Source of the DNA: Monocercomonoides exilis PA203
Lineage: Eukaryota > Protista > Preaxostyla
Reading direction: 5' to 3'
NCBI GenBank assembly: GCA_001643675.2
Contig: LSRY02000032.1
Coordinates: 620,001-684,000 of the forward strand
DNA length: 64,000 nucleotides
In this document: positions 42-32,500 of the stretch, piece after piece
How positions within the stretch are numbered: position 1 is the first letter of the stretch
How the letters are laid out: the number at the start of each line of letters is the position of its first letter
Program-made: the position numbers and the translations under genes
Notes under the pieces: generated by a model
The model's database searches: none
Told to the model about the DNA's origin: nothing
What the model saw: the letters and a program-made list of their open reading frames with translations, nothing else

Positions 42-1974
42 TTCTTCCTCTTCTTCCTCTTCTTCCTCTTCCCCATCTTCTTCCTCATCTTCTACCTCAT
101 CATCTCACAATGCAGATGATGACCTCAACGAATCAGACGAAGAATGGAAGTCCAAATGTGCCCAGCCTCCCTCTGATGAGCTCTGCCCCACTGTTGCCTC
201 GTCCTCATTCTCTTCCTCTGCGTCTGACCTGTCGAACTGCTACACACACACAGCTATGCACATTGCTTGCAATGACATCCACTTCATTCAGTATGCAGAA
301 TGCGTGGCGGCGCTGCTGGTGCGCTCGTCAGCAGCATGGAAGAAGCTGAAGAAAAAGAGCAGAAGAAATGGAACAGACAAGGAAGAAGCGAGGCATGGCA
401 GAGATGATAAAGGTGGTGATAATGATGATGATAATGACAATGCTGCTGCCAAGATGAGGCAGGTGTACAGCAGACATCTGCTGTTAACTTTTCCAATGGA
501 TGATTCAAATAGCACAAATGTGAGATCATTAAATGACACACTGCACAATCTTCAACAGTTGAGCTGCTTGCCAGACGCATATTTCCCTTCAAAGAGAACT
601 GGTTTGATGGCTTCTGATGCAAGCGAGACTGCTTCGAAGTCTGCATCTTCTTCTGCCTCAGCCTCAGCCTCAGCCTCAGCGTCTTCTTCTTCTTCTTCTT
701 CTTCATCATCATCTTCTTCTGCTTCATCTGCTTCATCCTCTTCTTCGTCTTCATCCTCATGTCGTGCTGCACCAATGCCCAGTTACTCAATCAGCAAGCC
801 AGCAGAAGTCATTGCCAAATCTGTTAACACAACAAAATGGCATGCGATTAACACAACAACAGTCGAAACGTCACCTTTGCCCATGTCCTATCGCATAGCC
901 CTGGCTGAGGTGTGCTATCAATTCGGCATCTGTTGCTCTGCTCCTGTGCTTCCCTTTGAGACACCAGAAACAGCAAGGAAAATGAAGATGTCAGCTGCTC
1001 CTCTGCCGGAAAAGCAGATGGAAGAAGAAGAAGAAGAAGAAGACGATGATTCTCATGTTTCCTCGTCTGCTGTATCGTCTTTGCATAATTCTGGAAAACG
1101 CAAAAATAAAAATAAAACGAAAAATACAAAGAACTCATCATCTTCTTCTACATCCTCATCCTCATCCTCCTTCTTTTCTCTCAACCGCCTGTCTCAAACT
1201 TCTGTCCCCTCGTGCCGCACCCCAGCGCTGACTAACCTGGCAGATCCTGTTGTTCCTGCAGGCAGTCCGCACATTCCGCGCCTTCTGCTGTCTTCGATGT
1301 GGCATCCAGAGCTCTTTCCGTCTGACGTGCCGTTCAGCCAGCTGATGTTTGACCCGAAAAAGGCAGTTGTTCTGTCGGTTTTGAAGATGGTTTATTCAAC
1401 AAGTGAAAAGGCGGGGAAAGAAAAGAGTGAAAAACAGAGGGGGAATGAAGGAGAAAATAAAAATGAGAGGAAAAAGAAGCAAAAGAAAGCCAAATCAGAT
1501 GGCGAGAGGAATTCAAAAGAATTTGACGAGAAGAGAAAGAATGATGACGATACATCTGTTGATTCTGAAAGAGAACAGGGCAATTTCATCACCAACCAGC
1601 AAGTGTGTGAGTTTCTGCTTCCATTCTGCAGAATGTTCAAGATGAGGCGCATCAGAACAAGAAAAGAATTGGCTGAGCTGCAGACCATCCGAGAAATGGA
1701 GCAGAAGAGAAATGGAGTGTTTGAGCAGATTCATTCTTCATCATCTTCAATGTTAACATCATCATCTTCTTCTTCAATGTCATCTTCATCTTCATCATCA
1801 TCTTCATCGTCTTCTTCTTTTTCTCCCTCTTCTGATATTCTGACCGAAGATATTCCATTGTCTTCTCGTTTCTTGATCTGCTTTGCCACACGAAGACATG
1901 CCCTCCTCTTCAACACATGCCACGATGCTACACAGACCCATGTTGCACTCATTTTCCCACAGTGCCACGAATAA
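1..1974 (+). CDS. 3' part of a Ser-rich low-complexity protein of unknown function (5'-truncated by window edge)
   Basis: Frame 1 is open from base 1 (tcc/tct Ser run) to TAA at 1972-1974. Poly-Ser/Glu tracts are interleaved with globular-looking blocks; no family confidently recognised. Confidence 0.75.
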
Positions 1975-8829: not shown

Positions 8830-10072
8830 CTAATTCATATAATGCTTCTCGTCCAAGTCAGAAAGATCATCTTCGTTGCAAAAGTCGTCATCGTCATTCA
8901 TACTGCTGCCAAAGCCTGCCATGCGAGCTTGGCGGTGGCGGCCCTTCAGCCCCATTCTCTCCATCGTTTCTAAGTCAATTGAGCCCCTTACCTCTTTCCT
9001 TTCCTTTTCGAACAGATCAAAGCGGTTCATCTTGCCTTCAAACTCTTCAAGAAGCGGCAGAAGTCGTGTGAGCGATATAATTGTCGCAGCCTCAGTAAAT
9101 TCTTTCAAAAAGGCATTTGAAAACGTTGAGGAAGCAGCTTGAGCTAATGTTGACGATTCATCCGCAACAGATGATGAAGAGGATGACGACGATTGCTTTG
9201 CCATAGCAGGTACTGGAAGATTCAAGGCATGTGGAGTGGATGAAACAACTGCATCTATTTGTCGAAGGATTTGATATGTGCATTGCTGCGTCTCGATTGA
9301 AGGCTTTGTTGAAGAACTTGCTAAAGATAAGAGTAATTCAAAAAATATTTTATTGTTTTCCATGTAACAAAAAATTTCAACCAAACCTATTTTTTTGTGA
9401 GAATTTTTTGATGCCCCCAAAAGAAATTGTTTTATTGCTACAACTCTTTCTCTAAGGAGAGATAAAACATTTTGAAGAGATGATAAATGATGAGTAAATA
9501 ATGATTCTGCGCTTTGATCAGATCCTGGGAGAATTTTATCCATAGTATCAACAGCAACACGTTCTGGCTCGAGCGCTTCTGATTTATAAGTAATTCTATG
9601 AAAATTATCATCCTACGCAAAAAATAATTTCAAAAATAAAATGAATTTTTTTATTATTCCAAGAATCTTTGCAAACCGTAAACTCGTACAATGAAAATTG
9701 CTTTTCTTCTTCAACTTGCTGAGGATCAAATGTTAGGCAAAGCAATTGACATTCGGTCACTGCAACAAACTTGTGTTGAAGATCAATCATGGGCTTTGAT
9801 GGAGTACCTCCGATAAGATACCATCCAAGAAGAGCATACGTTGGATAGCATGTTTGTATTTGCTCTGCTCTGTCATGAAGGAATTGTGAATTTACTTCAT
9901 TCTTTTCTACAACTGCTTCAAAACTTGTAAAAATTTCAACGCGTTGTCCAATTTGTGTTCCCAACAAACAACCAGCAATGATCTGGCTTGAAGGATCTTT
10001 CTGGTTAAGATTTACTCTTGTAAAATGATCAGAAACATTCAAAAAAACAAGCGGATGAATCACAACGTCCAT
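8830..10072 (-). CDS. COPS6: COP9 signalosome subunit 6 (non-catalytic MPN domain)
   Basis: MDVVIHPLVFLNVSDHFTR..GCLLGTQIGQRVEIFTSFE..LLGWY. Intron 9676-9613 joins to SEALEPERVAVD..HLSSLQNVLSLLRERV. A probable second, in-frame 66-nt intron lies near 9390-9325. Confidence 0.88.
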
Positions 10073-10706
10073 CTTCGATTTAAACAAAGATATAATGGGT
10101 TCAAAGAGTTTAGAGAGTTGTTTTTTCTAATATTTATTCTTTGTTGATTAATTTTGTTGGATATAAGCAAAGTTATTTTCACATCACGTTTATGTCAACT
10201 TCTATTGTTTTTATATTCAGATTCTTGGCTTTGTGAAAAGAAAAAAGTGAATTGAAACTTGTGGTGAAAAAAAAAATTTAAAAAAATTAATCAAATATGA
10301 AGAAATTGATCTTGTTTCTATATTTTTTTGAATAAGACAATTTGATTGACAACCTTTGAAAAATTGAACAATGTCAATTTTTTTCTCCTCTTTTACAGGA
10401 ATAAAAAAATCAACAAATAGACCATGAAGAAATTGTTGTTTCAGATTGAATTTTTTTTTTTTAAGAAAATATTGAAAAATTTTTTTATTTTTCTTGACAA
10501 TTAAAATGCTTGAAGCATTGCAAATTGAAAAAAAAAAATAAACACAATTGAATTACGTAAATTATTTTGATAACAACAAACATAAATAAATGAAATTTTT
10601 CAAAAATGAAAGAGCAAGAATTGGAATCATTTAAAATCCAAACTTACTAGATATAAAAACAGTATTGAAATGGTGGATATGAAATGTTATTTTAATTTTT
10701 CTTTAT

Positions 10707-11444
10707 TCAACAATCGTAACTTGCTGAACAAAACCAAAATTGATCACCTTCAACGTCAAGTGTCCGATTAAAACAAGACGATGAATAACATGAAGAACGG
10801 ATCAATGCAGAAACAGGAAAAACAAGTTCGGAAGTATCATTTCCCTGGTTGAAAATAATTAATTTGAATTTTAAATTCCCAGAAAAAGTGCATACCGCAG
10901 TGAAAACCGTTAAATCTGGAAATGCTCTTGATATTTCGTCGATGGCACTTTCGCTGAATGCATATTTTGATTTATCTCCAACTTATCAAAACAAAAATTT
11001 AATGACTAAAATTATGCTTTGATGCATACAATGAGCAAGAATCAAGCAATATCTCAAAGTCATATGCAAAGAAGGCAAATGTTCGAGAGATTCAATTAAC
11101 ATTTCGTAACTTCTTTTATTTGTTACATCAAGAAAGAAAATGATAAAATCACAATCAATTACAAGTGATTTTGCTAATGTTTCCGATGATAGACTTCAAA
11201 ATTATAATAAATTAAAAAACAAATAAAAGATTATCGAATAAATGCAAAATAATCATCCAAACACAATTGAGTAATGCTCAGGAAATTGCTGAATAAGTGC
11301 TTGTGCAAGCAGCTTTTTTCCACAACCTGGAGATCCTATTAACTAAATTTATTTTATAAATCAATATATTCTGAAAGTGCCTTCCTTATAAAATTGTAAT
11401 AAAAGAAATACAATCAGTCGTTGTGGCCGGAGCAAACGTGACAT
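10707..11444 (-). CDS. CENPM: CENP-M-like small GTPase-fold protein (166 aa, 5 exons; not in ORF track)
   Basis: Exons 11444-11412, 11342-11263, 11193-11030, 10981-10896 and 10844-10707 are all GT-AG and total 501 nt in frame. Product: MSRLLRPQRLILIGSPGCGKKLLAQALIQQF..LAKSLVIDCDFIIFFLDVTNKRSYEMLIESLEHL..YCLILAHFGDKSKY..FPVSALIRSS..DC*. It is colinear with remembered human CENP-M blocks (MSVLRP, LAKSL, IDLIVFVVNLHSKYS, ESLRHV, VSAL..LLRSS). Confidence 0.75.
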
Positions 11445-11505
11445 AATTCAAATAATTTGATATGGGAATAATCAGTTCATTTTTATTTTGAATCTTTCAA
11501 TTCAC

Positions 11506-12868
11506 ATGGCTTCATTGACCGAAAGATGGATGACAGGAGATGACGTAAAGCCAACTCCTTTAGAAAAACATGATAGGGAAATATTATGTTTGGACGTTAA
11601 CGGAAATGAGCTTGTAACTGGAAGTTGTGATCATGCACTTCACCTTTATGATATCAAAGCTCAACGTCTAAAAAGGAGATTATACACAAAGCAATATGGG
11701 CATCATGAATGGTTAATATTTTGAAAAATTTTTGTCATTAACTTTTTGAGATATTCAGGGTTTCTTGTTGTTCATATTCTTGCGACGGGAGAGTTGTTTC
11801 AGGTGGAATGGATTCAGTAATTTGCGTTTGGGACAAGTCATCTCCTAGATGCGCTTATTTGACTGAACACGAGTATGAATAAATATTTCTTTTCTTTATT
11901 TTACTTCAAAGAATTAATATAGAGCATCTATTTCTGCAATTGCAACAGATAAAAGCTCTCCTGGAGCTATATCTGCATCATATGATAAGACACTTAAGGT
12001 TTGTTTCAGATTCAATTCCTTTCATTTTTTTTTTCAAAAACAATCTACAATTATATTTTTGGTGATTTCATCAAGATTTGGGATTTAAATACTTGTTCAT
12101 GTATAAGAACATTAACTGGTCACACTGGCCCAGTTAATGATGTTATATGGAGAAGATCTTTATGCTTAAGCACTGGACGTGATGGTCTTCTTATTGCATG
12201 GGTATTTTGCTATATATTTTTTTGATGTATCTTTTTCATTTTTTCTTTCATTTTTAATTAATTAACTTCAATTAAATTTATCGGTTTATTTTGTTGCAAT
12301 ATAGGATGTTAATACTGGAGACCGAGCTGTGACAGTGCGGCATACATCTCATATGTCTGCAATGCATCTTTTTGATGATGATTTAGGATGTGTGGCAATT
12401 GGTACACAAGACGGAACTGTAATGATATATGACTTGAGAGATTTCCGTCGTCCGATTATGTCTGGCATCCTTCATCCACACAGCGTTGCAGCAGCATTGA
12501 CTGCAATTGAAAATAGAACATCTTCTTACTTGGTTAGTGCAGGATCTGATAAAAAAGTGTTAATTCTCGATTCCAAAATGGGCTGGAAGAGGAGAGCAGA
12601 ATTAACAGGACATGCAGCACCTGTTCAATGCTTATGCCCTGTAGTCATTCCTTCGTTGCATCATTCTACTGAACTTATCTGCAGTGGAGGAGCAAATGGA
12701 TGGGTTGTCGTTCACGACGCGGGCTCTGCAGACGGAGAAACAAATGCTTTGTATGCAACAGGAGCTTGCAGAGGTGGAGTTAGATGTTTAAAAACGACTG
12801 ATGATAAATCAGTGTTGTGTGTTGCTGGAGATGATCAGGAGCCAGTTGTCATGGATTTTGGAAGATGA
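11506..12868 (+). CDS. WD40-repeat protein, 5 exons
   Basis: ATG at 11506; four GT-AG introns (first 11712-11758) link WD repeats LVTGSCDHALHLYD, VVSGGMDSVICVWD, ISASYDKTLKIWD, LTGHTGPV and LVSAGSDKKVLILD. Confidence 0.9.
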
Positions 12869-13137
12869 AAATTATATTCAAAAAGGAAGTTGCCCACATC
12901 TTCAAGAGAAATAATTGGATTTATTTATAGATTTTATTTTATAAAAACAACATTGAATGAAATTTTTGTTAAAAATTTTTGATCTTAATATTGGGTTTAT
13001 GGTTATTCATAAACTGTCTGTTAAATTTCTTGGTTTTGCAGCACTTCACTTGCTATGTACGTTTATCCTTGCAAATAATTTATTATTTATTAATTTCATA
13101 CAATGTTTTTTATAGATTATTTCTTTTTCTAAGAGAA

Positions 13138-29519: not shown

Positions 29520-32500
29520 AATTTGAAAAAAAAAAAGGCAAAATAGAGGAAGCAAATGGAACATGAAGAAAGAAAGAAAGAGTAAATAAATAAATGAATA
29601 ATAAAAAAGAAAGAAAGAAAAGAAAGAAAGAAAGAAAAGAAAGAAAGAAAAGAAAGAAAAGAAAAAAAAGAAAGAAAAGAAAGAAAAGAAAGAAAAGAAA
29701 GAAAAGAAAGAAAGAAAAGAAAGAAAGAAAAGAAAGAAAGAAAAGAAAGAAAGAAAAGAAAGAAAGAAAAGAAAGAAAGAAAAAAAAGAAAGAAAAGAAA
29801 GAAAAGAAAGAAAAGAAAGAAAAGAAAGAAAAGAAAGAAAAGAAAGAAAAGAAAGAAAAGAAAGAAAGAAAAGAAAAGAAAGAAAAGAAAAAAAAGAAAT
29901 AAAAGAAAGAAAAAAAAGAAAGAAAAGAAAGAAAGAAAAGAAAGAAAAGAAAGAAAAGAAAGAAAAGAAAGAAAGAAAAGAAAGAAAGAAAAGAAAGAAA
30001 AGAAAGAAAAGAAAGAAAAGAAAGAAAAGAAAGAAAAGAAAGAAAAGAAAAAAAAGAAAGAAAAGAAAGAAAGAAAGAAAAGAAAGAAAAGAAAGAAAGA
30101 AAGAAAAGAAAGAAAAGAAAGAAAAGAAAGAAAAGAAAGAAAAGAAAGAAAGAAAGAAAAGAAAGAAAAGAAAGAAAAGAAAGAAAGAAAGAAAAGAAAG
30201 AAAAGAAAGAAAAGAAAGAAAAGAAAGAAAAGAAAGAAAGAAAGAAAAGAAAGAAAAGAAAGAAAAGAAAGAAAAGAAAAAAAAGAAAGAAAAGAAAGAA
30301 AGAAAGAAAAGAAAGAAAAGAAAGAAAGAAAGAAAAGAAAGAAAAGAAAGAAAAGAAAGAAAAGAAAAGAAAAGAAAAAGAAAAGAAAGAAAAAAAAGAA
30401 AAGAAAGAAAAAGAAAGAAAAGAAAGAAAAGAAAGAAAAGAAAGAAAAGAAAGAAAGAAAAGAAAGAAAGAAAAGAAAGAAAAGAAAAGAAAGAAAGAAA
30501 AGAAAGAAAAAAAAGAAAAAGAAAGAAAAGAAAGAAAAGAAAGAAAAGAAAGAAAAGAAAGAAAAGAAAGAAAGAAAGAAAGAAAAGAAAGAAAGAAAAG
30601 AAAGAAAAGAAAGAAAAGAAAGAAAAGAAAGAAAAGAAAGAAAAGAAAGAAAAGAAAAGAAAGAAAGAAAAGAAAGAAAAAAAAGAAATAGAAAGAAAAG
30701 AAAGAAAAGAAAGAAAAGAAAGAAAAGAAAGAAAAGAAAGAAAGAAAAGAAAGAAAGAAAAGAAAGAAAAGAAAAGAAAGAAAGAAAAGAAAGAAAAAAA
30801 GAAAAAGAAAGAAAAGAAAGAAAAGAAAGAAAAGAAAGAAAAGAAAGAAAGAAAGAAAAGAAAGAAAAGAAAGAAAAGAAAGAAAAGAAAGAAAAGAAAG
30901 AAAGAAAGAAAAGAAAGAAAAGAAAGAAAAGAAAGAAAGAAAGAAAAGAAAGAAAAGAAAGAAAAGAAAGAAAAGAAAGAAAAGAAAGAAAAGAAAGAAA
31001 AGAAAGAAAAGAAAGAAAAGAAAGAAAAGAAAGAAAAGAAAGAAAGAAAGAAAAGAAAGAAAAGAAAGAAAAGAAAGAAAGAAAGAAAAGAAAGAAAAGA
31101 AAGAAAAGAAAGAAAAGAAAGAAAAGAAAGAAAAGAAAGAAAAGAAAGAAAAGAAAGAAAGAAAGAAAGAAAAGAAAGAAAGAAAAGAAAGAAAAGAAAG
31201 AAAAGAAAGAAAAGAAAGAAAAGAAAGAAAAGAAAGAAAAGAAAGAAAGAAAAGAAAAGAAAGAAAAGAAAGAAAAGAAAGAAAGAAAGAAAAGAAAGAA
31301 AAGAAAGAAAGAAAGAAAAGAAAGAAAAGAAAGAAAAGAAAGAAAAGAAAGAAAAGAAAAGAAAGAAAGAAAAGAAAGAAAAAAAAGAAAAAGAAAGAAA
31401 GAAAAGAAAGAAAGAAAAGAAAGAAAAGAAAAGAAAGAAAAAAAAGAAAAAGAAAGAAAAGAAAAGAAAGAAAGAAAAGAAAGAAAAGAAAGAAAAGAAA
31501 GAAAAGAAAGAAAAAAAAGAAAAAGAAAGAAAAGAAAGAAAAGAAAGAAAAGAAAGAAAAGAAAGAAAAGAAAGAAAGAAAAGAAAGAAAAGAAAAGAAA
31601 GAAAAAAAAGAAAAAGAAAGAAAAGAAAGAAAAGAAAGAAAAGAAAGAAAAGAAAGAAAAGAAAGAAAAGAAAGAAAGAAAAGAAAGAAAAGAAAAGAAA
31701 GAAAGAAAAGAAAGAAAAGAAAAGAAAGAAAGAAAAGAAAGAAAAAAAAGAAAAAGAAAGAAAAGAAAGAAAAGAAAGAAAGAAAAGAAAGAAAAGAAAA
31801 GAAAGAAAGAAAAGAAAGAAAAGAAAAGAAAGAAAGAAAAGAAAGAAAAAAAAGAAAAAGAAAGAAAAGAAAGAAAAGAAAGAAAAGAAAGAAAAGAAAG
31901 AAAAGAAAGAAAAGAAAGAAAGAAAAGAAAGAAAAGAAAAGAAAGAAAGAAAAGAAAGAAAAAAAAGAAAAAGAAAGAAAAAGTGAATTGATTCATATTA
32001 ACTATTGGCACATACCCATTGCACAGAACAGTCATCGCTGTAATATGCTCCATCATCAACCTGTCTCTCTCTTCATTCATTTGTCTGCTTTGTTCCCTCT
32101 CTGCTCTTTCATCGCCCCTCTTTTGCGAATCTTTCTTCGATACGTCTTTTGCCCTTTCAGCTTCTCTGGCGCTTGCTCCAGTGCTCCCTGGGTAGTCCAT
32201 CAGCATCACTGATGCCTTTCCTGTGTGAGAGTTAATAACTTGAAACCCACTCCCCATCGATGTGATAAAGCGATCCTGTAAAGTTGGTATAAATGCGTTG
32301 TATAAATAATATCAGAAACAAATAAATTGGAATAAAAAATTCAATGAAAAGTTATCATTTTTCAGATATCATCAATAAAAATAAATAAATCTTTGGAGAT
32401 TAAAAAAAGCAAGCAAGCCTTGTCAATTGGATGAATGCATCGAATGGCCCACTCTTCGCTCGGCCTTCGCTGAGCCATTCTCAGTTTTTCTTTATCTTTT

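Follow-up and report, generated by a model that had tools for sequence, protein, structure and literature searches.

Human CENP-M belongs to the CENP-HIKM complex and is a pseudo-GTPase (Basilico et al. 2014; Pesenti et al. 2022), whose role is considered constitutive (PMC9235857). The human protein has a small-GTPase fold from which the alpha1-beta2 loop, strand beta2 and switch I are missing; its switch II is divergent, and an invariant leucine (Leu52) stands where Ras has Gln61. Binding of human CENP-M to CENP-I requires residues L94 and L163, and the closest structural relative of CENP-M is Rab1A (Basilico et al. 2014, PMC4080450). The same work already reported P-loops in distant CENP-M proteins. 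Van Hooff et al. 2017 (Dataset EV1, PMC5579357) give 21 CenpM orthologue sequences, with which we made comparisons by eye only.

Monocercomonoides exilis is an amitochondriate oxymonad of the Metamonada (PMC8767320). In an earlier survey, 15 out of 70 kinetochore proteins were detected in M. exilis (Karnkowska et al. 2019). The inventory of Salas-Leiva et al. 2021 (Supplementary Data 4, PMC8516963) records CenpI, CenpK, CenpL, CenpN and CenpS for M. exilis and leaves CenpM, CenpH, CenpC and CenpA blank. For the other metamonads none of CenpI, K, L, M and N is recorded, and the inventory holds no metamonad CenpM at all (PMC8516963). CenpM and CenpI have correlated phylogenetic profiles (r = 0.76).

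Here we describe a minus-strand gene from a stretch of 64,000 nucleotides of M. exilis DNA, referred to as the window. Judged from its sequence, the encoded protein is quite likely the CENP-M orthologue of M. exilis. The positions of the gene and of its parts can be seen in Table 1. The five exons between 11444 and 10707 join into a frame of 501 nt that opens with ATG, has no internal stop, ends with TGA and encodes 166 aa. Without splicing, the three minus-strand frames of the same interval contain 9, 18 and 15 stops, respectively, and no long ORF. Each of the four introns is of the GT..AG kind, with a GC content of 0.17-0.25 compared to 0.36 for the exons. At the local composition, 166 codons would stay open by chance with a p of about 2e-6, and an in-frame TGA lies two codons 5' of the ATG. 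The gene is present in a single copy in the genome, for which we searched the Nanopore assembly of M. exilis PA203 (82,301,135 bases in 101 contigs; Treitli et al. 2021, PMC8767320).

Table 1. Features of the CENP-M-like gene. Positions are those of the window.
Feature	Position	Strand	Description
Head-to-head spacer	11445-11505		very short (~60 bp), shared with the plus-strand WD40 gene
Exon 1	11412-11444	-	33 nt, MSRLLRPQRLI; start codon 11444-11442
Intron 1	11343-11411	-	69 nt, GTATTT..TTTAG, phase 0
Exon 2	11263-11342	-	80 nt; strand beta1, P-loop relic, helix alpha1
G1-like motif GSPGCGKK	11313-11336	-	residues 14-21; Lys instead of Mg-binding Ser/Thr
Intron 2	11194-11262	-	69 nt, GTTTGG..TGAAG, phase 2
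Exon 3	11030-11193	-	164 nt, 54 aa; LAKSL, then beta4-alpha3-beta5 core
LAKSL	11163-11177	-	residues 44-48; replaces G3 DxxGQ; placed by eye
Intron 3	10982-11029	-	48 nt, GTATGC..ATAAG, phase 1
Exon 4	10896-10981	-	86 nt; end of HFGD site, helix alpha4, strand beta6
Intron 4	10845-10895	-	51 nt, GTATGC..ACCAG, phase 0
Exon 5	10707-10844	-	135 nt + TGA; C-terminal helices, tail

The RNA evidence was taken from four metatranscriptome runs of one study, which contain about half of the sampled words of window positions 9000-13000. Contigs of these runs were placed on positions 10400-11800. One of them, X3 (222 nt), covers 10750-10843, 10895-10981 and 11030-11070, so that exon 5 is covered down to 10750. 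Exons 3, 4 and 5 are joined in this contig, with introns 4 and 3 precisely removed; both introns have CT..AC ends on the plus strand. None of the contigs placed on 10400-11800 covers exons 1 and 2 or introns 1 and 2. The four junctions predicted by a previous reading of this DNA from its letters alone (the sequence-only reading) are hence spliced as predicted at introns 3 and 4 and uncovered at introns 1 and 2, for which all of the support comes from conserved positions and phases in the homologue described below.

The spacer upstream of the gene leads into a WD40-repeat gene on the plus strand (window 11445-11800), the later exons of which encode the WD40 repeats. RNA contigs of this gene start at 11486-11495, and all four RNA runs show splicing of its 47-nt intron (11711-11757). 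Directly downstream of the CENP-M-like gene, on the same strand, lies a JAB/MPN-domain gene (8830-10087, minus; Pfam JAB, E 4e-12), which probably encodes a subunit of the proteasome-lid or COP9 type. Farther along the window, positions 29569-31981 are occupied by a 2.4-kb pure polypurine microsatellite, (AAAAGAAAG)n, with about 267 copies, a match of 90%, and values near 1 for GC skew as well as for AT skew.

A phmmer search of the whole library with exon 3 gave one match only, P0001 (E 1e-3, 43% identity), which sits on a metagenome contig of 1,032 bp (JGI metagenome 3300042620, contig Ga0466728_305746, positions 1-1032). We refer to this homologue as L013. Its gene, read by hand and checked by script, has four GT..AG introns of 33-39 nt at the same positions and in the same phases, and a stop-free product of 163 aa. 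The exons of L013 measure 30, 80, 164, 86 and 132 nt, compared to 33, 80, 164, 86 and 138 nt in M. exilis. The two proteins are about 29% identical overall, with 39% identity in exon 3 and 5 of 10 residues identical in exon 1. Each exon is more alike between the two than shuffled controls are, with z values from 3.9 to 9.2 (exon 1, 3.9; exon 2, 6.2; exon 4, 6.3; exon 5, 5.0). The shared gene structure together with the similarity of the proteins shows that conservation as a coding gene extends to the whole model, the two introns uncovered by RNA included. The CENP-M-like gene is real, and the splice sites, the RNA at introns 3 and 4 and the conserved homologue confirm the four-intron, stop-free model of 166 aa that the sequence-only reading had proposed. 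As for the contig itself, L013 is eukaryotic, with 24% GC and very short introns (GTTT..TTTAG), and it may come from an oxymonad other than M. exilis or from some related anaerobic flagellate. Neither a profile search with exon 3 nor two metagenome scans added further homologues.

In order to place the protein in a family, we scored Pfam profiles on each exon separately, with matches kept at E <= 10; the gathering cut-off of the CENP-M profile (PF11111) is 25 bits. The sole Pfam match of exon 3 was CENP-M, with 17.1 bits and E 0.0035 over profile positions 65-102, which is below the cut-off. Exon 3 of L013 behaved in the same way, with CENP-M as its sole match (16.1 bits, E 0.0073, positions 66-104, again below the cut-off), and the matches of the two homologues are colinear on the profile. 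The Ras, Roc and Arf profiles matched no exon of either homologue at E <= 10. A contrast of CENP-M with Ras, Rab and Roc profiles had been suggested as a check; scored exon by exon, exon 3 matches CENP-M only, at a sub-threshold score. The proposal of a CENP-M-like protein derived from small GTPases is supported in that CENP-M is the one family that exon 3 matches, with no exon reaching the cut-off.

Exon 2 gave a different set of weak matches, to the Walker A regions of Mg_chelatase, AAA, AAA_5, ADK and Guanylate_kin (E 0.006-0.25, none reaching the cut-off of its family). Taken at face value, these would point to a small P-loop enzyme, an ATPase or kinase similar to AAA proteins or adenylate kinase. 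We regard such an identity as extremely improbable: the matched region is a generic Walker A of just about 20 residues, the match of exon 3 is to CENP-M and to no member of this group, and 166 aa are too short for an AAA+ module. L013, moreover, does not have the Walker A glycines, yet the remaining protein is conserved.

Sequence searches of the PDB with exon 3, with exon 3 of L013 and with two-row profiles of exons 3 and 5 did not recover CENP-M. The matches obtained there were at chance level (E 0.3-1) and fell on a methyltransferase, CheB, HA-33 and an antibody chain. A feature search of the ESM Atlas with exon 3 returned generic Ras/Arf fragments only, with scores below 0.9, and nothing usable once those families were skipped.

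Searched in six frames with PF11111, the genome gave a second weak match, at C11:1055117-1055305. We rejected it as a second CENP-M, as it belongs to a genuine Rab-like GTPase with GDHFVGKT, TKTD and SAL, and the exon scores higher with Ras (30.4 bits) than with CENP-M (19.2 bits). The Rab-like gene (G000:C11:1053617-1056805; L001, about 1150-1800, plus strand) is multi-exon and encodes an acidic/lysine-rich tail. The score of 19.2 bits for a Rab-like exon indicates that the CENP-M profile partly reads a general G-domain signal. Furthermore, hhalign aligned the DFIIFFLDVTNKRSYEML block of exon 3 with the beta4-alpha3 block of the Rab-like protein (IDIILFLFDFSKKSSFDSL) over 20 columns with E 0.0014, a match that fits a descent from small GTPases.

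These results bear on the explanation that the protein is a lineage-specific, highly divergent small-GTPase-like protein with no link to the kinetochore, the likeness to CENP-M being that of a shared G-domain core. The CENP-M match of 17.1 bits is sub-threshold, the Rab-like protein receives 19.2 bits from the same profile and is joined to exon 3 by hhalign, and the Atlas neighbours are Ras/Arf fragments, all of which would be in line with such a protein. We nevertheless consider this explanation unlikely. No exon of either homologue is matched by the Ras, Roc or Arf profiles, the traits of CENP-M are present (the invariant Leu of LAKSL, the spacing of a missing switch I, a GK followed by a basic residue, and [K/R]xC), and the partners of CENP-M, with the exception of CENP-H, are known in a genome whose CenpM slot is otherwise empty. 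By its invisibility to the Ras, Roc and Arf profiles the CENP-M-like gene is also set apart from the Rab-like gene. The segment formed by strand beta1, the P-loop and helix alpha1, and likewise the beta4-alpha3 block, resemble Rab proteins. Unlike Rab, the protein has, judged by its sequence, no switch I, no DxxG, no NKxD, no Mg-binding Ser/Thr and no Pfam Ras match.

The reading as CENP-M is best followed along the human protein, which has 180 aa compared to 166 aa in M. exilis. Both begin with MSxL(R/K)P, both have a short link from alpha1 to beta3, both have a D-hhhhF-h-h-(D/N) strand followed by ESLxH, and both have neither DxxG nor NKxD. The LAKSL of M. exilis is identical to that of human CENP-M, and its Leu48, kept in L013, was taken by eye as the equivalent of human Leu52 and Ras Gln61. 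Lys20 and Leu48 are 28 residues apart, compared to 45 residues from K16 to Q61 in Ras, and this short spacing fits the deletion of switch I and beta2 that would be expected of a CENP-M. With LAKSL at G3 and HFGD at G4, DxxG and NKxD are lost; the Ser/Thr that binds Mg is missing (Lys21), and so is the switch I Thr at its expected position. A [K/R]xC motif can be read by eye in strand beta5, as RYC in M. exilis, KSC in L013 and KVC in human. The two proteins differ at the P-loop, where GxxGxGK is complete in M. exilis and two glycines are missing from human CENP-M. M. exilis also has a shorter loop behind LAKSL, by about 7 residues, and the overall identity, judged by eye, is low.

The motifs named by the sequence-only reading are in place: LIGSPGCGKK is encoded by exon 2, and HFGD is encoded across the junction of exons 3 and 4. 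The claimed absence of DxxG also holds, with none at the switch II position. The sole D-x-x-G of the protein is DVEG (residues 151-154), which sits near the C-terminus and was rejected as a G3 motif. Five blocks had been aligned by eye with CENP-M in that reading. MSxLRP, LAKSL, the D-strand and ESLxH have human counterparts. The fifth, VSAL..RSS, is probably not colinear with its human equivalent, as colinearity would require that helix alpha5 had lost about 16 residues. The segments after beta6 are equal in length in the two proteins (45 and 47 aa), and an ungapped reading places VSAL within helix alpha5. In L013 the V[S/T]PL motif of the family is found about 12 residues further downstream. 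The C-terminal third of the M. exilis protein aligns poorly, and its helix alpha5 appears to be shortened or divergent.

The CenpM orthologues from outside the vertebrates share with the M. exilis protein a GxxGxGK P-loop in which the next residue is K, R, H, S or T, with xLA after it, and DxxG is absent in all of them. By eye, the KYAF of exon 4 is common to M. exilis and both Mortierella CenpM sequences, AIDE(I/V) to M. exilis (AIDEI, likewise in exon 4) and Aurantiochytrium, and an N-terminal L(R/K)PQ to M. exilis and Mucor. In the M. exilis protein the N-terminal lead and the switch II loop are both shorter than in these orthologues, and its tail, rich in Cys and Ser, carries a G.Q.W motif that only L013 shares.

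The G1 site is of particular interest, as the sequence-only reading had taken the retained P-loop as the mark of a special intermediate between GTPase and pseudo-GTPase. In Dataset EV1 (PMC5579357) the site reads GSYGTGKK in Branchiostoma, GIKGIGKH in Nematostella, GTHGVGKS in Capsaspora, GHAGIGKR in Mortierella, GPALSGKR in Mucor, GDKGTGKT in Dictyostelium and GIDGIGKR in Aurantiochytrium. Among these sequences GSPGCGKK, with a basic residue in place of Ser/Thr, is the ordinary form of non-vertebrate CenpM. Outside vertebrates, published CENP-M proteins normally keep the P-loop (PMC4080450, PMC5579357), so the idea of an intermediate is not news and is left unsupported.

A related question is whether the protein, as a CENP-M, still binds nucleotide or phosphate through GSPGCGKK. 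The glycines and the lysine of GxxGxGK are intact, an Asp shared with L013 persists near the former NKxD site, and binding assays have been made only on human CENP-M, which lacks the glycines (PMC4080450); our literature search found no nucleotide-binding study of a P-loop-bearing CENP-M. On the other side, the nearest homologue, L013, has GLVPDAKR at the site, from which it follows that the P-loop glycines are free to change and the loop is unconstrained. CenpM orthologues that have likewise lost G2 to G4 widely carry this relic. This loss of glycines in L013, taken with the missing Mg2+-binding Ser/Thr, switch I Thr, DxxG and NKxD, makes nucleotide binding very unlikely in our view. If it did occur, CCAN assembly in the amitochondriate M. 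exilis would depend on a nucleotide or phosphate ligand, and M. exilis CENP-M would be a living example of the transition from GTPase to pseudo-GTPase.

As for the partners of CENP-M, a six-frame Pfam search of the M. exilis genome found CENP-I (G000:C32:630113-630460, 29.1 bits summed, above cut-off) and CENP-L (G000:C61:291138-292430, 32.3 bits, E 1e-6). The same search gave no match for CENP-K, CENP-N and the CENP-C cupin, and for CENP-H coiled-coil noise only. As CenpK and CenpN were missed here and are nevertheless published for this organism, the six-frame blanks reflect the low sensitivity of exon-wise searching and not absence. The search of the genome for other CCAN subunits, by which the first interpretation could be checked, has thus yielded CENP-I and CENP-L, with I, K, L and N in the published inventory (PMC8516963). 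That interpretation had assigned the gene to a protist lineage in which the CCAN is usually poorly detected, and the gene does belong to a protist that has CENP-I, K, L and N and for which no CENP-M was reported (PMC8516963). Most likely, the gene fills the empty CenpM slot of M. exilis and had escaped the published kinetochore inventories.

Membership of the CENP-M family is suggested by the sub-threshold profile match in two homologues, the motifs seen by eye and the presence of the partner genes. We infer this membership, and likewise the fold, the binding to CENP-I and the localisation to the kinetochore. The M. exilis protein would have arisen from a Rab/Ras-like G domain by the loss of switch I and beta2, DxxG and NKxD. 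It would most likely work without nucleotide cycling, and GSPGCGKK would be the usual P-loop relic of non-vertebrate proteins and not a working GTP site. The protein would probably act as a constitutive structural wedge of the inner kinetochore (CCAN), where, like human CENP-M, it would bind and stabilise CENP-I (MONOS_11357 in M. exilis) and touch CENP-L/N and CENP-K. The M. exilis gene leaves the known mechanism of CENP-M unchanged. For the organism, the addition of CENP-M would complete a mutually contacting set at the CENP-I / CENP-LN interface of the CCAN.
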